Positions 6,879 through 61,853 of a stretch of DNA of 64,000 nucleotides are shown here, piece by piece. The stretch lies in assembly GCF_036321535.1 (NCBI RefSeq), contig NC_087442.1, forward strand, positions 71,920,001 through 71,984,000, written 5' to 3'. Origin of the DNA: Camelus dromedarius (lineage: Eukaryota). Numbering within the stretch: the first letter of the stretch is position 1; every line of letters begins with the position of its first letter. The position numbers were made by a program, and so were the translations under genes. A model generated the notes under the pieces. The model saw only the letters and a list, made by a program, of their open reading frames with translations. It had not been told where the DNA came from and ran no database searches.

Positions 6879-7545
6879 GTAGGATCTAATGTCTTTTTAA
6901 ACTATCAACAGACATGTGCATTAGGTTCAGTATTTCCTCACGGAAAAAACCCACGGTCGAGGGCAGTGGGTCCTCGGGCATGCTCCCTAGGCTTCATTTA
7001 CTTTCAGTACCACTGTCCTTTATTGCTTCCTGCAGCTCTATACACACGACCTCATCCTGAGCCTCATCCTTCCCTCCAAGAAAAATGCCTCTGTCTGGAG
7101 CAGATGGGAGTGAGATTTTATTTTCCTCATACTTGAAACTGATACCCTACTTTGGAAAAAAAGCAAATATATTTAAATAACATTTAAGTAACAGGTGCCA
7201 GGGATCCTATTTCTTTTGCTTTCCTACCCTCCCATCTGCTTGAAATATTCTTATTAATTTGTTTCCTTAATTTAAAAAATGCAAATAATTGAGATGAGAA
7301 GTATTTGAATGTGATTCTATTTACTGGAATAACAAGACCTATTTTACAAGCATGGTTTGAATATAAAAATGAGTATTATTTTCACTGCTGTTGCATTATT
7401 AAGATCATCTTAGAAATTCTATCACAAAATTACTCATTTACGATACCAAGAAACAGAAACCCTTCATGTTAGAAAACGTCCCTGGACATTTAAGCACCTT
7501 TCCCTATGGACTGGATGACACAGAATATTAAACATTAACGCCACA

Positions 7546-7872
7546 TTCTAGATGTACCTTTTAGTAATGAAAAAAGTCAAAAAAGCTTTGACTTTGGATC
7601 ACTGGAAGGGTTAAGTTTCCAAATCAAATTCTATCTCCTCATTGAGCCTTGAGCATCTTATCTATTAACCATCCCAGAATATCCTTGTCACTGCTATTCC
7701 CAGCAGAGTGTGGGTAAGCATATGACAGGCTCTCAGTGGCAGGGATGGGTGCAGCTTGATTTTTGGCCTTTAATGATGTTCTGGGTAAAAACACCCTGAC
7801 AGGCAGTTTCAGCCCACCTACGTGATGCTACTAAATGTTCTAGATGTACCTTTTAGTAATGAAAAAAGTCAA
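7546..7872. repeat. 257-bp insert (7581-7837) flanked by a perfect 35-bp direct repeat (7546-7580, 7838-7872)
   Basis: ttctagatgtaccttttagtaatgaaaaaagtcaa occurs twice exactly. The enclosed sequence aligns to 8861-9120. Confidence 0.92.
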
Positions 7873-8860
7873 TAAAAACATAATGAAGTCATTCATGTAT
7901 CAATAATGGGAATATTTTTTAAAAGTAGAAAAAATGGAAAAAACTTTATATGAAGTGTTTATATCCATTTGTAAGGAAAAATTGTTTCAGTGGGATCAAA
8001 GTTTAATTTTTAAGCATTAAAATTGGTGATATATAATATCTAATTAGAATACTTCTTACATAGGTGGCCAGGATATTTTCAAGTCACTATGGAAGAAAGC
8101 TCTTCAATATCTGTCTCTGAAATCTGTTGATTTCAGGCCCACAAATAGTTAATTTCTGTAAGAGAAGCCAAAGATCAAACCAGGATAAAAGTCCTGCCAA
8201 GGGTGGGATCGACATCCTCCTAGGCAGATGTAAGCCAAGGGTGTCTTCAGGTTGTCATCACCGTGGTACAGCTCCTCTTTGGCAATGACTTTCTCCAGAT
8301 TCCTGATCTTTGATCCAGTTTCCAGGGTTTTCCTAAGTCCAGATGCTCCTCCCCCTCTGCCCCTCCTAAGTCTGTCACAGCATTCTTGGCACACTTCCTT
8401 TCCTCTCTTACCCTTTCTCTCTAAATTCCTCACTGCAACACAGGCTAGAAGCTGAGTGCAGGCCTTGAAGCCAACCCTACCGAGGTCCTAATTCCAGGTT
8501 CCCCATTAATTCATGGCAGTTGCTGAGGAATAAAGCAACCTTTTCTTCACTTGCCTAACGAGGTTGTTGTAAAGATTAGCTGAAGTCAAGCCCTAGCAGT
8601 GTTATAACTTGGTGTTAGCTTATCTTGCATCGGCTAATGGAATCTTCTGGATCCTAGATTATCTGCATCATAAGCCAGCTTTGAAAATTAATGTCACATA
8701 TTGAACACCTAGAAGCTCACAACCATGGTCATTCCCTACAACAGCACCAATTCAGTATCTTGTCAGAAATAGTCTCTATCATGAATTACATTTTCTGTGT
8801 ATCTGTGCCTTGAACATGCTGAGCCTCAAAAGTCTCTGTACTTGCTATTCTCTTTGCCTG

Positions 8861-9120
8861 AAATGCTTTGACCCTGGATCTCTGGAAGGGTTAAGTTTCC
8901 GAACCAAACTGTATCTCCTCATGACACCTTGAGCATCCTATCTGTTGACCATCCCAGATTATACTTGTCACTGCTATTCCCAGCAGATTGTGGGTAAGCA
9001 TATGACAGGCTCTCAGAGGCAGGGGTGGGTGCGGCCTGATTTTTGGCCCTTGATGTTTTCCTGGGTATAAACACCTTGACAATAGCCAGTTTCAGCCCAC
9101 CCGCATGATGTCACTAAATG
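8861..9120. repeat. Second, direct-orientation copy of the 7581-7837 segment
   Basis: Hand alignment at offset 1280 gives 222/257 identical positions with one 3-nt indel. Confidence 0.92.
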
Positions 9121-9249
9121 GAGAGTTGGGAAGAAATACAAACAGCTCTTTCTAGCCATGCCGATGTGAGCCGGTACCATTACACACTTACAAATATCAC
9201 ACTCCTTTTCTTTAAACTGTTTAAACTTACCAATATGTGAAATCACCTT

Positions 9250-9400
9250 CTTTGTCTTCTTTCTTTGTTTCGGTGTCTGTCTCGTATGCTCTGAGCTCCA
9301 GGAAGGCAGGGGCCACGTCTGCTTACAGCTCTATCTCTCGTGATGATCACAGTGTCTGCAAAGAACAGGCATCCAGTCAATTCTTGCTGGATGAATAATG
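9250..9400 (+). mobile_element. L2 LINE 3' end
   Basis: ctgagctccaggaaggcaggggccacgtctg...cacagtgtctg...tcttgctggatgaat matches the L2 3'-terminal pattern. Confidence 0.6.
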
Positions 9401-11765
9401 TCCCATGCCAAGCACTCTATGAACATTATCTTTGTACTCTCACTGGAGTATGATGGATGGCCATTGCTATCCTCATGCAGGATAAAGAGTCAAGAAATGG
9501 ATACTAAAACAAGGTGAAGGGTTTTCCCAAGATCATACAGAGAAGGGCAAGAAACTTGATTAGAAGTGCATTATCTTTCTAAATTCAAAAATCACACTTC
9601 TTCCGCTGCTTGCCACAGATGGGCTGTAAGGTCAATGGGGTGGTAACCCTTCTTTTTCTGTAGAGTAAGTGCTTCTTCCAATGTTGCTGGTCATTCATAA
9701 TTCCCTTCAGAGAGAAGAAGGGAGGCGGAGGATGACAGCCACCTGGGGAGGTGGCTTTCAGTTGTCAGGGCTCTGTGGTGCTTCACAGGTCTGTACTTCT
9801 GAAACTAGGGGACGTGACAAATGCCCATGAACACACAAAACCTCAAAAAACCATGTTCATGTTCTGAAACATCTATTTTACTCAGTACTAAATAATATCA
9901 TTACTCATACATTTTTAAAATTGTATTTTGAATAGAACATATTTGCATTAGAACACTAAGACTCTCATGGGCACATCACCATTTTCCTGTCCTTTTGTAA
10001 ATCTGTACTGAATTCTGTGAAGCATTTTAAGTTATTTAAGTGATCTATTCTACTTTCATAAATTGCTGGATTTTTTGAAGGAATGAGAAAGGTCCTGCTA
10101 ATTATCTATCATGGTATCGAAAATGTAAGACGTTTGTGAACTGGATTGTGAAGCTCAGTTAGGCCTTACCTGGACGTAACATGTTCTATACTATGCAATT
10201 GCTACCTCTTTCGCATCTGCTAAAACAGGTTTTGAGCTCTTTTGTTCCCTTAATAGGTTTTGCTTCCTCTCTGCCTCAAGAGGGTGTGTTATTAGACATT
10301 GTGAGAAAGAAAATGCAGGGAATTTCTCTAAAAAGTATTTAAACAACAAAATTTTGAAAATACTTAAATTTTACTATAAAACATAAAAAAACAACAATTT
10401 ATACTTTTTTCTTAAGGAACTATGTTAAATCATTTAAATACATTTTTAAGTTCAGTCACAGCAATTGAGATATATTAATCCGTTAATAAATTCTCCCAGT
10501 TAAATCACTTTTTTTTTGAAGTACTAAAAAGGATTCTCCAAAAGTACGCGGGCTTTTGTAGTGTAAAATTCTTTAGTATTTCAAAATATGAACTATAAAA
10601 ATAATGTACCTTCCAACTTCATTTCAGTAAGTGCCCAGGTACTCACATTAGCACTTAACGTGTATTCACATAGTATAAATCATCCTAAGACTATTTAAAA
10701 TGAAAGACTTAATTTACATATTAATTTAGAGAACTGCAGAATTTTAAACAGTAGCATCAAAATGAAAAACTTCTCTACGTCAATGTACTGTATCATCCTC
10801 ATGTATCATCTAATTTAATGGAAATTACCTGAGAGTTCTTATCAAACCAGAACTCCAACTGTCAAACGGGAAAATTAATTATCTTTACAGATGTTCAAGT
10901 ACTATGCAAAAGGAAAATGCAATGCAAATGTGATCCCTTTTATTTTTGTAAAATAATTCCTCAGAGCAAAGAGCTTACAGATTTATAGGGATTTATCAAA
11001 CAATTACAGAGAAGTCATTTCTTCCTAATTGCTCCACGATTAGAAAACAGAATTGAAAAGACATGAAACTATATGGAAGCAAAGGAAAAGAGGTCAGCAA
11101 CTATTACAGCAGAGAGCTGCAGAGTTTGTAAATGTAACATAACTATTTTCAACCGTGTTGGAGCGAATCTCTGTTATGCAATCAATTGTAACTGTTTTGA
11201 ATTTGAAGTTTAATCATGTGCACTGTGTTTTCTGTGGAGGCATGAATCACGTGAGGAGTGAGTCTGATTGTCTATCCAGCAGCTCCATTCCCTCAGCTTT
11301 GTTATTCTCTACTAGATCTCACAGAGCAATCACTTAGGTAGGTTCATGCTTAAGCTATATAAGATGATGTCTAATTTATTCTCGTGATAGAATTTACTTT
11401 AATAACTTTAAGAATTATATTATTCAATAATTAGAAAATTATTGAGTGGGCATTTTAAGTTACACACACACGTACGTAGTAGAAAATATATAACGGTATT
11501 AACAATTATAGGTAGTTTAGAGAGCCAGGATCCCTTATGGATGTCAACCCTTGTAATTTTGTTTTTTAATCACAAGCACTTAAGAGATTCAGAATGACCT
11601 CTGGGCATATCCCTTCTATCTGCAAGTATCTGCCCTAATCTATTTTCAAAACCCGGCACCAGGCAAAGACTTAGGCCATCCTGCTATGGCTGTATAGTGG
11701 GGACGCAGAACCACCTGTTGGCCCTAACATATGTACCTATCTTAAGACTTTATGTCTAGACTTAT

Positions 11766-18617: not shown

Positions 18618-18749
18618 NNNNNNNNNNNNNNNNNNNNNNNNNNNNNNNNNNNNNNNNNNNNNNNNNNNNNNNNNNNNNNNNNNNNNNNNNNNNNNNNNNN
18701 NNNNNNNNNNNNNNNNNNNNNNNNNNNNNNNNNNNNNNNNNNNNNNNNN
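18618..18749. other. Sequence gap (132 N) covering the exon 8 acceptor and ~118 coding nt
   Basis: Run of N. Other gaps are at 26134-26267, 48337-48525, 59935-60078, 60275-60445 and 61324-61451. Confidence 0.99.
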
Positions 18750-26050: not shown

Positions 26051-29000
26051 TCACGATTATGAAGGTAAGTAAATCCATTCCAGCCCCTGTGAAGAGTATA
26101 CAAAGCAGACAATCCACTTTAGGACAGGAATAGNNNNNNNNNNNNNNNNNNNNNNNNNNNNNNNNNNNNNNNNNNNNNNNNNNNNNNNNNNNNNNNNNNN
26201 NNNNNNNNNNNNNNNNNNNNNNNNNNNNNNNNNNNNNNNNNNNNNNNNNNNNNNNNNNNNNNNNNNNTTCCCAACTCTAACTTAATGTTCATTGTGGAGT
26301 AGGGAGGAGTAATAAAAATGTCTAAAGAAAGTGATGTATCATGAGTAAAAAGATATCATTTGTTTCTACTCAATTGTTCTCAAAAAAAATCTTCAATGCA
26401 TTCAACAAAATTTTCAATTGCTAAATTTTACATACTAATTTTATATCCCAAACAAGGTTACATAAATGTGTCAGTAATCTGTTTCTCCAAAGCCATTTAC
26501 CACATCCTATTCTTATCAGTAGGAATAGAAAAGCTTCCAGAGAAGATGTCAAACTCATCACTATTCAAAAAGTCATAGCTAGCACTACCCAAAAGATATC
26601 TGAAAGAAACCAACACCACTCTTGCCTTTGCTGCCAGTTTGGCACCCCTGTAAACAGAAGGCACATCTAGTGTCTCAGAAGTTGTGAAATCTGATTGCCA
26701 ATCCAGAGCAGACACAGAAGTCAAATGGATTTTTCTGAGATTTTGGATAATGAACAACAGTACATTACAAAGGCCTGCGGCAATTAGTCCATTGTGTAAG
26801 AAACATAAACCTTAAAACGTAAGCATTTCTTTTATCTCACTGCTTGTAAAGCTAGAATTACATCATAGAAAGCATTACCCTTAGAAGAGCAAAACACAAT
26901 AAAAGAATTAAACTTTAGAATCTTTAAACATTTTATTTCATAATGTCTAATGATATTTTTACAATCTTTTCTTTCGGCTTTGAAAATGCCATACTTCCCT
27001 AATTTAAGGGAAGCTTTAAGGGTACTGCTAATATTTTTTGATTTTTAAAAAAGCTTTCTTCAAGCCTTTTAAAAGCAACTTTTATCTTCTTAACAGGACA
27101 GACTCTGAACTGCCTCAGCACGTAACCACTGTACGAGCATAAATTATATTTTCCTCAGAGTATCAGTAACTTTTAAAGCAAGTTCCATCTGTACTATAAA
27201 TAACCCCTATCTGGGACATTCCAGAAGATTACAAATCATGTACCTGATCAAAGTTCTATTCCAGAGCTTCAGAAAATGCTTACACTTCAAAACTTGAAAT
27301 ACCACCTGGGGAATCAATGAACTTTCATGTCTATAAATACAAGAAGATAACAGTGGAACTCTTATTTGCATGTTTCTACCATCTCAATATATTCTGCTTT
27401 TAGATTTATCAGCTTATAAAATACCTTTACATAAAAATATTTCCTTCACTAAGATGTTTAAGAATATATTTAGTTACTGGCAATAGACTTCAGTGGGAAA
27501 TCAAGAAAGACTTATTCTTGATGTTTAATAATTATAATCTTTGGTATTCATTTAGGCATTTGGTAATTTCCATTAATCATGTATGTGTATATAATAGAAC
27601 AGTCGTAAAATGTTTAGATTTCTTCTAATAGCCTTCCTTAATTTTATAAGCCCAACAAATTCAAAAAATCTCATTTTTTTTGTTGTTGTTGTAAACTATG
27701 GAGTCAAGTTGCTGAATAAAATTACCCTCATCATCTCACGTCTCATGAAGACCTAAAATAACTTTACTCAATGCAATTTTTAATGTGTCTTTTTAAACTA
27801 ATAAAACCTGCCAGTTTCTTAGTCCTTCCTGAACTCACAAATTTAAGTCAACCAGTTGGGGGTTGTAAATTTTTCCTATACAGTTCATGGGACTTTTTCA
27901 TGAAAAAAATTTAAAAGATTCAGTGAATTTCTACTGTTCACGAACTCAATCTATGCTCTCTCTCAGTTGTGTTTCAATTCCTAAAAGGTAACTAGCATCA
28001 GTTTCAATTTTTAAAGAGATTTGAAGAGGCAAATTTTCCCTCATGTATAATGACCAGACCACATTACAACCAGCCTGTAATTTATTAAATGCACACGATG
28101 AAAATGGTGATTGTATACAATGACTTTCTGATAATCATATAATACCGTACACAGTGTGTTGTGATATTTACCTCTGAAACAGTATTTTCAGTTTGAAAGT
28201 TTTTCTTTCTCAGTTAAATCAAGTCTGACTGCACGAGAGGCCTATCTTTAAACCCCATCTCAGCAGAGGCCCAGCAGATTTGTGCTTCTCTTCCCTTTGA
28301 GACCTACGACAACAAAATGCCCAGCTGAGCCCAGAGCATTTTCCAAATGTTCCAAACCCAGAAGGCTGGTGTATCAAACATCCACATACTGTGACATTAA
28401 CCTCCAGCCATCAGCTGACTAAGGGCATTAGAGCTGTATTAAAACCATGTTGAGGTTTTAAATCACTTTGTCAAGTAACCCACATAGTGCCGTATTTTAT
28501 TACTATTCCAACAAGGAGTGGCGAGAAACAAGAACAGTATAGCTGAGTGTAAATTTTGAAAGAAAAATGTTCTGTTTAGATATGTAAGTTGTGTAAGCAG
28601 AATATGATAAAACTGTCATCTGGAACTCAAAGGGTATTTATTTTGATCATCTCTCTATAAGGAAGACTTCTTACTAAGTAGGGTTTTTCCAAACTAGTAG
28701 AGGATTTGCTCCTTTCAAATTTTGGTATCTTGAACCATAATGAATATTTCAACAGTATTATCAACTCTTCTGTCTTCTGAGGTGGAATATATTCAATGTA
28801 TTTTATCCTTTTCTTAATGATCAGTAATCATGATGATGAACAACAACTACTATATTGTAATGCAGTGATACTCTGAGTTACAAGTTAGGCATGTGGGTTT
28901 CATCTTATTTATTGTCCTAGGGACTCATATATGTGAGGAGATAATATGAGTCACACGAGAAAAAGTTCTTGCCTTTAAAGACGAACATGCAAGGGAAACC

Positions 29001-48212: not shown

Positions 48213-48601
48213 TGTATTAGTCAGCGTGGGCTACCTTCACAAAATACGGATTGAGTGGCTTAAAGAGGAGTTTGTTTTCTCACAATTATAGACTCGGAAG
48301 TCCAAGATCAAGGTCTACCAGCATTCAGTTTATAATNNNNNNNNNNNNNNNNNNNNNNNNNNNNNNNNNNNNNNNNNNNNNNNNNNNNNNNNNNNNNNNN
48401 NNNNNNNNNNNNNNNNNNNNNNNNNNNNNNNNNNNNNNNNNNNNNNNNNNNNNNNNNNNNNNNNNNNNNNNNNNNNNNNNNNNNNNNNNNNNNNNNNNNN
48501 NNNNNNNNNNNNNNNNNNNNNNNNNTCTCTTCAGTACAGCCACATTAAAGGTTAGGGCTTTAACATACGAATTTTGCAGGGACACAATTCATTTCATAGC
48601 A
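48213..48601 (-). mobile_element. MLT1A-like MaLR solo LTR (middle in N gap)
   Basis: tgtattagtcagcgtgggct...ggaagtccaagatcaaggt [gap] cacattaaaggttagggctttaacatacgaatttt...catagca. Confidence 0.75.
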
Positions 48602-57370: not shown

Positions 57371-60300
57371 GGGACAGAGAGTGATGTCACCATCATGATG
57401 GTATGAGTCATTTCTTTTTCTCTCCCCTTTGATTTACAACTAATTGGACATCCATAACCAGAGAATTTAAAAAGGATACCTCTGCACAGCATACAGAAGG
57501 ACACCTGAGAGACCCACCCATCTGTGCATGCCAAAGTGAGTTGACAACCTCGGAGGCTACACAGTGACAGACGTGGCAGCAGCAGAGGTGCCTGCAGGTC
57601 CAGAAGAGGGCCACACAACCCTCCTGGCAGAGGTGAAAGAGTCAAGTGGGGGTTTGCCCAGATGGGAGTGCTACAGCTGGAAAGACCCATTGCTCTTTCT
57701 GAGGAGAGAACTGCAGTGACTGGGGGAGGGCGAGTAAGGAGAAGAAAGCAGACAGATCTGAAGGAAAGCATTTCCTGCTGTCTGCCCTGGGATTCTGGCA
57801 AAACCACCACCCACAAACCTCAGTGACCGCTCCCCCCACCAACTCAAGGATTCTACTACCAGGCCATGGCACACACCAACCCAGCTCTGCTGCAACCTTC
57901 CCCTTGACCCTTCCACTGGTTTGTTGTTTTGTTAAATGCACATGATTCCTAGTGCAGCAGCCTGTCAGCTGTGGTCAGAGAAACCAAAACCTTGTGCTCT
58001 AGTGCCACCTTCTGGGAAAAAGGCAGGCTCCTAATTACCAATTTGTTGAATTGTTACAATCAAAGCCTTTACCTAAATAAGGTGTTCACCATTTGAAAAA
58101 TGGCAACAGAAGCACCTTCCATCAAATACTTCGAAAAATCATTGTTATACAGTGTAACAAAAAGAAAATAACCATTTTTCAGTAAGCAAACCCAAAGACA
58201 TGGAATATCAGGTCGGTGAAGGATTCAAAATAGGTGTTATGAAGAAATTTAATCAGTAACAAGAAAACCCAAAAAGGCAATACAATAATTTTGGGAATAA
58301 AATTAACAAACAGAAGGAGTCCTTTACCAGAGACTGAAATTCTAAAACAGAACCAGACAAATTCTGTAGCTGAGGACCTCAGTAAATGAGATGATGAATG
58401 CAGTCAAAGATACTGGAAAACAAGAAGATCAGAGGGAAGAGAGAATTTGTGAGCTTGAGGGCAGGAATATAGAAATGACTCAAGTGGAAGAGAAGAGAGA
58501 ACTAAGATTTTTTTAAAAGTGAAGAAGATCCCTACAAGAACCATCAGACTGCATTAGGAAAACCAACAAAGATTAATGGGTATAACAGAAGGAAAAGAGG
58601 GAGAAGAGAGCAGAAAGTGTATTTTAAAAAAAATAGCTGAGAAGTTTCTGAACATGGAGGAAGAACTAGGTACACAAGTCCATGAAGCTGATAGAGTACC
58701 TTATTATCTCAAAAGAAAAAGACCTTCTCCCAACACATTATATTAAAAGTGTCAAAAGTCAATAAATAAGAATTATAAAGGCAGCCAGGAAAAGACTAAA
58801 TCTTACAAAGGAACTCCCATTAGGCTAATATATTTTCCAGCAGAAACTCTATAGGCCAGGATGGAGTGAAATGACATATTCAATTTAAGGAAAGATAAAA
58901 ACTACCCTTCAAGCTGAAATGAAAGGACAAAAGCACGCAAAACTCTAATTAAGGCAATAAATAGACAGTCAGAATTAGAAAACTGTAACTCTTTAGAATA
59001 GTGTATTAAACCCTTAATTATAGCATAAAGATGAAAGAAAAAGAGCACTAAATATAACTACAGCTACTACAATTTGGTAGTGAAATAACAGCATTGAAAG
59101 AGAATTGGTGACATCAAAAATTTAAAAGGGGAAGAGTAAAAGGATAAAACCTTTATAGATGAGTGAAGATGAATTGCTATCAGCAGAAAAAAGGATTATT
59201 TTATCTATGAAATGTTTTATGTAAACCTCATGGTAATCACAAAGCAAAACTCTAGAACAGACACGAAACAAAAAAAGGGGGAGGCTGAGCAAATCACCAT
59301 GGAAAATTACCCACTTACAAAGGTAGACAGAAAGAGGAGAAAGAAATAATGGAGAGACCAAATAAGCAGAAGGCAAAAGAAAAGATGGCAGTAGTAAAAC
59401 CTTAGATACCAGTAATCACCTTAATTTTAAGTGGGTTGAACTATTAGTCGAAAATTATGGAGTGACTGAATGGATTAAAAAAGAAGAACTAACTATATGC
59501 TGTCTACAGGAGCCTCATTTTCTCTCTAAGGGAACACTCTAAATGAAAGGATGGAAGATGATATTTCAAGCAAATAGAAACCAAAAGAAGGCAGGTATAT
59601 CCATTCGTATGTCAGAAAAATATAGATTTCAAGCCAAAAAGGGTGACAAAAGACAAAGAAGGTCATTTTGTAACGGTAAAGGGGTCAGTACATCAAGAAG
59701 ATAGAGTAACTGTAAATATACATGCTCCCAATACCCTAGCACCAAAATATATTAAGCAAATACTAACAGATCTTAAGGAAGAAATGGGCAACAATACAAA
59801 AATAGCCACAATCAGCAATAAATACATCATTCGGACAGAAAAATCAAACAAGGAAACATTGGAATTGAACCACACTTTAGAATAAATGGACTTAAGATGT
59901 ATACTGAACATTCAACTCAATAGCAGAATACACANNNNNNNNNNNNNNNNNNNNNNNNNNNNNNNNNNNNNNNNNNNNNNNNNNNNNNNNNNNNNNNNNN
60001 NNNNNNNNNNNNNNNNNNNNNNNNNNNNNNNNNNNNNNNNNNNNNNNNNNNNNNNNNNNNNNNNNNNNNNNNNNNNNNAAAAACTAGAAATTCACAAATA
60101 TGTGGAAATTAAACATGCTACTGAACAACCAGTAGATCAAAAAAGAAATTAAAAGAAAAATTTTAAAGTACCAAAACAAATAAAAATGGCAGTATGATAT
60201 ACAGAAATCAATTACATTCCTTTACACTAAGGATGAAACATCTGAAAAAGAATTAAAAGAACTAAAAGAATTGTNNNNNNNNNNNNNNNNNNNNNNNNNN

Positions 60301-61853
60301 NNNNNNNNNNNNNNNNNNNNNNNNNNNNNNNNNNNNNNNNNNNNNNNNNNNNNNNNNNNNNNNNNNNNNNNNNNNNNNNNNNNNNNNNNNNNNNNNNNNN
60401 NNNNNNNNNNNNNNNNNNNNNNNNNNNNNNNNNNNNNNNNNNNNNTTAAAATGGGCATACTAACCAAAGCCATCTACAGATTCAACACAATCTCCATCAA
60501 AATACCAAAGGCTTTCTTCACAGAAATACAAAAAAAATCCTTAAATTAGTGAGGAACCACAAAAGACCCCATACACCAAAGCAATCCTGAGGGGGGATAA
60601 AAAAAGGCAGAGGTATCACACTTCTGGATTTCAAACTATGTTGCAAAGCCATAGTAATAAAAACCCCACTATGGTACTGGCACAGAAGCAGACACACTGA
60701 CCCCAGAATTGAATCCTGGCATATACAGTCAACTAATATTTGACACGAGAGCCAAGAATACCCACTGGGGAAAAGACTGTCTTTTCAAAATGGCGCTAGG
60801 AAAACCGAAAAAACTCATGTGGAACAATGAAATTGGACTCCCATTTCACATTATTCACAAAAACTAACTCAAAATGGATTGAAGACTTTAGCATAAGACC
60901 TGATATGATAAAACTACTAGAAGAAAACTTAGCAAAGCTCTTGATACTGTCTTGGCAATGATTTTTTGGACATGACACCAAAAGCACAAATAAAAGCAAA
61001 ATTCAACAAATAAAACTACATCTAACTCAAAGGCTTCTGCACAGCAAAGGAAACCATCAACAATATGGAAATACAACCTACAGAATGGGAAAAAATTTGT
61101 GCAAACCATATATTGGAAAAGGAGTTAATATCCAAAATGTTTAAAGAACTCAGTCAACTTAATAACAAAAACACAGTCTGATTAAACAATGGATAGAAAA
61201 ACTAAATAGATGTTTTTCCAGAGAGGACACCAAAATGGCCAAAAGGCATATGAAAAGATGCTGAACAATAAATCATCAAGTAAAAGCAAACAAAAACCAG
61301 AGAAAAAGAAAGCAGGATTGTGCNNNNNNNNNNNNNNNNNNNNNNNNNNNNNNNNNNNNNNNNNNNNNNNNNNNNNNNNNNNNNNNNNNNNNNNNNNNNN
61401 NNNNNNNNNNNNNNNNNNNNNNNNNNNNNNNNNNNNNNNNNNNNNNNNNNNTGCAGCCATGAGAAAGGTGGATATCCTACCATTTGCAACAGCATAGGTG
61501 GATCCTGAGCACATGCTAAGCAAGATCAATTAGACAAAGCCAAGTACTAGATCATATCACTTATATGTAGAATCTAAAAAATTTAAACTTGGTTTTTTTG
61601 CAAAAGGGCAATTACAAGGGGAGGAGAAGTGGATTAAGACTTATGGTGCTTAAAGGTACAAACTTATAACAAGTAGTAAATAAGCCATAGAGATCTAATG
61701 CACAGAATAATGAATATAGATAAAATTGCAATATAATTATATAATGTGATAAATATAGCTGTATCATATAGCTACACTGTATATTAAATTAAGAGTACAC
61801 CTTAAATTTGTACAATATTACATGTCAAATTTATTCAATAAAAAATGAAAAAA
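57371..61853 (+). mobile_element. Near end-to-end but internally deleted, inactive L1 (5' UTR, ORF1, ORF2 endonuclease, ORF2 C-terminus, 3' UTR)
   Basis: 5' end gggacagagagtgatgtcaccatcatg. ORF1 remnants at ~58200-58900. EN remnant KDKEGHFVTVKGSVHQED..VNIHAPNTLAPKYIKQILTDL (59643-59885). [17 protein letters not shown] at ~60450. AATAAA at 61837. Many stops and frameshifts. Confidence 0.9.
58000..58015 (-). promoter_or_regulatory. Candidate CTCF motif within the L1 5' region
   Basis: Minus strand ccagaaggtggcacta closely matches the CTCF core CCASYAGRKGGCRSY. Motif only, no binding data. Confidence 0.45.

Follow-up and report, generated by a model that had tools for sequence, protein, structure and literature searches.

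In the 64-kb window of the dromedary genome that was analysed (the whole stretch of 64,000 nucleotides; positions 71,920,001 to 71,984,000 of contig NC_087442.1), a segment of 257 nt, X, is inserted between two perfect copies of a 35-mer, A. A related segment, X', lies downstream in the same orientation, at a spacing of 1,280 bp from start to start. The features of this arrangement, referred to below as A-X-A, are the following (TSD, target-site duplication).

7546..7580, plus strand: 35-mer A, left TSD copy, 35/35 identical to 7838-7872
7581..7837, plus strand: X, the acceptor copy, an inserted patch of 257 nt, 87% identical to 8861-9120
7838..7872, plus strand: 35-mer A, right TSD copy, 35/35 identical to 7546-7580
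8861..9120, plus strand: X', the donor segment, sole other copy in the 2.3-Gb genome
about 8981..9190, plus strand: old hAT-like MITE copy (209-nt family consensus), cut in two by the right edge of the donor

The 35/35 direct repeat and its coordinates, which had been claimed in a sequence-only reading of the window, hold on re-measurement. In a global alignment, X and X' are identical in 224 of 256 columns, with 32 substitutions and three gap events (one of them of 3 nt); the 222/257 identity counted earlier matches this, with a slightly different placement of the gaps. The likeness between X and X' goes no further than the inner edges of the 35-mers, as had also been claimed: when the flanks of X' were compared with the 35-mer and its outer flanks, the best local scores were only 6-7, that is, noise. 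The 35-mer reads TTCTAG...GTCAA, is AT-rich (29% GC) without any CpG, and can be extended to 39 nt with one mismatch (7546-7584 and 7838-7876). The genome-wide copy count that had been suggested for X was carried out on the animal's own 2.3-Gb assembly and gave exactly two copies, 7581-7837 and 8861-9120; with X, X' and wider queries, neither a third copy nor a closer donor was found in this assembly. The 35-mer likewise occurs at two genomic places only, 7546-7580 and 7838-7872. Both target-site flanks are unique in the genome, so that no host repeat dates the insertion site. No other proximal duplicates were found within the 64-kb window.

The ends of X read ...GTCAA/AAAAGCTTTG on the left and ...CTAAATG/TTCTAG on the right (slashes mark the junctions). 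The left junction is blunt, or has at most two to three ambiguous A's in common, and the right junction has a microhomology of 0; no filler is visible at either. Neither end of X carries a poly(A)/T tract in addition to what the donor itself has (the four A's correspond to AAAT in the donor), and X bears no terminal inverted repeats, which confirms both absences noted in the sequence-only reading. The TSD starts at CA/TTCTAG on the plus strand and at TTTTTA/TTGAC on the minus strand, and an L1-type TTTT/A nick site is absent at either TSD end in either orientation.

The donor segment consists of 121 nt of unique DNA followed by the first 139 nt of the 209-nt MITE, which goes on for 70 nt past the right edge of X'. 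This composition is repeated in X, in which 7581-7700 corresponds to the unique DNA and 7701-7837 to the 5' part of the MITE; X therefore carries the flank/MITE junction too, and it ends where the 35-mer begins. On the right, X' breaks off at ...CACTAAATG/GAGAGTTGGG, within a block that is conserved in the family and is common to the genomic copies L005 and L006. Because X' is continuous with an older MITE running past 9120, X is a segmental copy, X' is its donor, and neither of them is mobile. An unrecognised low-copy mobile element, one of the options raised on first inspection, is contradicted by the presence of two copies only and by the edges of the donor, which lie in unique DNA on the left and in mid-MITE on the right.

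The MITE profile and consensus were built from 55 genomic copies, recovered by chaining from weak relatives that reach across the right boundary of X'; a first look at the genome gave 637 candidates. The consensus has perfect 14-nt terminal inverted repeats, CAGTGGTGTGCTGG ... CCAGCACACCACTG. The 8-nt sequences flanking the copies match at 7/8 positions in L009, L045 and L018 and at 6/8 in L019, with a mean of 3.4/8 over 20 copies versus about 2 expected, and a TA flank was found in none. The copies of the family (L004-L066) are about 72-82% identical to each other. On these termini and flanks, the old repeat under the donor is an abundant hAT-type MITE. An abundant 209-nt hAT-like MITE family is thus characterised in the camel genome as a by-product of the analysis. 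Around the donor, 8780-8880 and 9250-9400 may resemble L2/MIR 3' ends and 8440-8620 a MIR core; searches of the window with nhmmer and blastn for this likeness gave nothing and lend no support either way.

The locus was also followed in independent sequence data. Of the sampled words of 7400-9300, 98% are present in twenty public runs, which come from eight studies; the runs found carry two organism labels only and are identical in sequence. Contigs of four runs from four studies were placed on 6900-9700, using k=31 graphs. In each of these runs the 35-mer appears as a unitig of 35 nt with roughly the summed depth of its neighbours: 65 versus 27.5 + 33.7, 32.9 versus 18.5 + 12.3, and 19.2 versus 10.3 + 11.2, and, in the fourth run, which is of low depth, 10.2 versus 12.9 + 7.2. 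A unitig of 317 nt (7551-7867), which comprises X and 30 nt of the 35-mer on each side, was present in 4/4 runs with 0 differences. It is unbranched, shows X at single-copy depth and runs into the 35-mer on both sides in the four individuals, and the long downstream contig begins inside the right 35-mer, at 7843, in 4/4 runs. The words of this unitig are specific to X, because X and X' have no 31-mer in common. Such a pattern is the one expected in a k=31 graph for A-X-A with one X, a count that rests on depth since short-read graphs cannot span a 35-nt repeat.

Neither variants nor an empty-site joint nor a second context for X appeared in any of the four runs. That an identical donor persists elsewhere in the four sequenced animals is excluded, and the A-X-A structure is apparently fixed or nearly so in the sampled camels. 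The suspicion of an assembly chimera, voiced in the sequence-only reading, can be dismissed: each of the two junctions is seen in independent contigs, in four runs that come from as many studies, and the 35-mer has about twice the depth. As a separate observation, no contig from any of the four runs was placed on 6900-7463, with the neighbouring parts covered; this gap may be due to a record filter and hence does not show that the sequence is absent.

From X' to X, the changes are ten C>T, seven G>A, five T>A, two A>G, two T>C and six other transversions. The asymmetry that had been reported, 17 C>T/G>A versus 5 T>C/A>G, is thereby borne out for the 17, and the 5 is corrected to 4 on recount. 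The substitutions are evenly spread, with 14 in the left 121 nt and the other 18 on the right, and adjacent pairs number three versus 3.9 expected. Columns with CpG are enriched in changes (5/8 versus 27/248; Fisher p 0.001), and all three CpGs of X' have been lost in X. No APOBEC3/ADAR editing signature was recognized among the changes: one strand carries both C>T and G>A, the contexts are mixed, and there is no consistent TC/CC. Because the changes fall on both strands, are unclustered and are enriched at CpG, the differences between X and X' look like ordinary time-dependent germline decay.

With the MITE consensus as the outgroup, 132 MITE-derived sites could be polarised, and only these, because the left-side alignments were few and unreliable; for the left 121 nt, no relative suitable as an outgroup was found when the left parts of copies L061 and L031 were used as queries. 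X, X' and the consensus all agree at 73 sites, and at 42 sites X and X' are identical and both unlike the consensus. X alone differs at 10 sites, X' alone at five, and all three differ at two, X' being nearer to the consensus than X (83 versus 78 of the 132 sites). About five derived changes in 132 sites are accordingly assigned to X' and are best read as having occurred after copying, and the 3-nt deletion is derived and lies in X. The maximum-likelihood branch lengths are 0.110 for X versus 0.033 for X', a 3.3-fold difference. An X branch of zero length can be rejected (LRT p 2e-5), the corresponding length of zero for X' falls just short of rejection (p 0.07), and equality of the two branches is not rejected by these sites (p 0.17).

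The ages suggested by the insert and by its flanks are in conflict. At a clock-like t of about 0.06-0.07 per copy, the chance of perfect 35/35 flanks is about 2-4%, a figure that allows for the lower mutability of an AT-rich, CpG-free 35-mer. The earlier estimate of 0.5-2% for flanks and insert of equal age is in line with our recomputation, which gave about 1-4%. In a joint likelihood combining the flanks with the three-way sites and with the other sites, compared pairwise, a plain clock was nominally rejected (LRT 5.4-8.1, p 0.002-0.01, inflated because this case was picked for its perfect flanks). The joint maximum-likelihood fit favours a small age (t 0.005-0.013) together with 0.11-0.13 of additional change that is confined to the X branch. 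By a rough reckoning, a tail of 2-4% would be met about once in a scan of many genomes.

Among known systems, proximal repair-mediated duplications (RDs) were described in vertebrate genomes by Pace, Sen, Batzer and Feschotte (2009, PLoS Genet; PMC2671141). The donors of these RDs lie on the same chromosome within 5 kb (66% at less than 3 kb, with an apparent peak near 1.2 kb), and the RDs are 50 bp or more in length, with a mean of 162 bp and a maximum of 619 bp, and never have a poly(A) tail (PMC2671141). Mammalian genomes hold hundreds of detectable cases, with 202 RDs in cow, and the pipeline required that the acceptor interrupt a transposable element (PMC2671141). The junctions carry microhomology of 2-9 nt, filler, a deletion or a TSD of 4-21 nt; among the proximal RDs inspected, a TSD was found in 6/39 and a junction with a 'TSD only' in 0/39 (PMC2671141). 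The camel X is like these RDs in that it is one extra copy, 257 nt long, with its donor 1,280 bp away and no poly(A)/T, and it is like the minority of them in being flanked by a TSD. It is unlike them in the length of its flank duplication (35 nt versus 4-21 nt) and, with regard to the proximal RDs, in having a TSD without clear microhomology, filler or deletion. Its target is unique DNA and its donor partly overlaps a repeat, in contrast to the published set, and its oddity is that the flanks are perfect though the insert is 13-14% diverged.

Templated sequence insertion polymorphisms (TSIPs) fall into class 1, with poly(A), a TTTT/A site and a flank duplication of at least 5 bp, and class 2, with neither poly(A) nor flank duplication (Onozawa and Aplan 2016; PMC5110952). 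Their donors are distant and are thought to be RNA-derived (PMC5110952). A-X-A shares with class 1 a flank duplication of at least 5 bp and with class 2 the lack of poly(A) and of an L1 site preference, and so fits neither class cleanly; moreover, unlike TSIPs, it has a donor only 1.3 kb away and is apparently fixed, not polymorphic. An L1-mediated retrocopy, or a class 1 TSIP, was considered and rejected on finding neither a poly(A) tail nor a TTTT/A-type nick beside the TSD. In template switches of the FoSTeS/MMBIR type, synthesis moves to a nearby stretch and, after returning, repeats a short part of the original sequence, the junctions usually having 2-5 nt of microhomology. On these established models, copying of a nearby stretch in direct orientation would also yield A-X-A, but the right junction of the camel insertion is without microhomology and the left one has at most an ambiguous run of A's.

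On balance, and with modest confidence, we read A-X-A as an old, fixed proximal repair-mediated duplication, both copies of which have decayed in the ordinary way and the flanks of which have stayed perfect by chance. The old duplication is preferred because it needs one modest coincidence and nothing new. On this reading the flawless flanks are most likely a survival of low probability that is otherwise unremarkable, and a divergence of roughly 6-7% per copy would probably correspond to an age of tens of millions of years. The event may have begun with a germline break in non-coding DNA, the two strands being cut 35 nt apart, and fill-in of the overhangs would have produced the 35-nt direct repeat. 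The gap would then have been patched with about 260 nt, through SDSA-like synthesis or capture, the template lying 1.0-1.3 kb further downstream on that chromosome in the same orientation, and the ends joined with microhomology that was slight or absent. This template (8861-9120) would have been an arbitrary stretch made up of unique DNA and the first two thirds of an ancient MITE. A replication template switch that re-primed 35 nt back would give the same product and is indistinguishable from this route here. Of the options listed in the sequence-only reading, a templated patch of a double-strand break thus finds support, but the third, diverged donor that it invoked was seen neither in the assembly nor in the four contig graphs, the local twin being the only visible donor. 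The option of an old duplication with later gene conversion of the flanks fares similarly: the old duplication is the best reading, and conversion of the flanks is disfavoured by their length of 35 nt, which is too short.

The conflict between flanks and insert can be explained in other ways. X could have been copied from X' recently, with about 11% substitutions introduced during or just after synthesis by an error-prone polymerase, in a damaged single-stranded intermediate or through an RNA/cDNA intermediate. The joint fit with its small age and its excess on the X branch points in this direction, as do the 3.3-fold longer X branch, the zero X' branch that is not rejected, the loss in X of all three CpGs of X', and the derived 3-nt deletion. 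Such a capture would, however, need an error density without precedent, since no repair polymerase or break-induced replication known to us yields near 10% substitutions. The changes carry no editing signature (only four are A>G/T>C), they are unclustered and CpG-enriched as in slow germline decay, and the five sites at which X' is best read as having changed after copying do not suit a recent event. In the RDs of Pace et al., too, the divergence between donor and acceptor tracked the neutral expectation (PMC2671141). We therefore regard a young, mutagenic capture, which was also among the options of the sequence-only reading, as unlikely. A further copy of X', which had duplicated earlier, diverged, been copied or moved to this site recently and then been lost or left unassembled, would reconcile an insert that looks old and CpG-decayed with flanks that look young. 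It is quite unlikely nevertheless: the 2.3-Gb assembly contains no such copy, the four individuals show no second context for X, and two rare events and a loss would be needed, with a landing at a distance of only 1.3 kb from X'; the N blocks in the window measure 128-189 nt and lie at a distance of more than 9 kb.

It is also conceivable that the duplication is old and that its flanks were kept identical by something other than chance, be it gene conversion, purifying selection or a low local mutation rate. The sole observation in favour is that the flanks differ at 0/35 positions and the insert at 32/256. Efficient gene conversion in mammals needs homology far longer than 35 nt, there is no sign of function, the 35-mer is unique AT-rich DNA with no other copy in the genome, and its lower mutability is already included in the estimate of 2-4%; this possibility is accordingly very unlikely. 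A mobile element, an L1-mediated retrocopy or an assembly artefact is hardly credible. A flanking direct repeat is indeed typical of transposition, but only two copies exist, the ends of X are arbitrary relative to the older MITE, poly(A), a TTTT/A-type site and inverted termini are all lacking, and the junctions were confirmed independently. The candidate of a transposable element copy was rejected because the left end of X lies 121 nt outside the MITE and its right end 139 nt into the 209-nt MITE.

As an old repair-mediated duplication, the camel A-X-A would be one more repair scar of a documented type, with no sign of function. It would raise the flank duplication observed in this type of scar to 35 nt, a length that implies a break with its two strands severed 35 nt from each other. 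The conflicting ages of flanks and insert make the locus a clean test case for mutagenic templated patches in the germline. If a mutagenic capture were true, it would represent a patch-restricted burst in the germline, with about one substitution per nine bases, a broad spectrum and 35-nt flanks free of errors, and such a burst would be far above anything reported for repair synthesis.

The X patch has no visible function. Nine translations of ORFs from the region were looked up in the protein collection without an exact match, and 24 nt of the flank gave no match in a metagenome scan. An open frame of 51 codons occurs in the same register in both copies (7639-7794 and 8919-9074, both on the minus strand), and neither of its translations is in the protein collection by exact look-up. 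By eye about 15/51 residues differ between the two, too many for a conserved coding sequence, so that the frame looks like a chance ORF. Elsewhere in the window there are six exon-sized N blocks of 128-189 nt (18618-18749, 26134-26267, 48337-48525, 59935-60078, 60275-60445 and 61324-61451), which are the nearest candidates for the exons of the gene.
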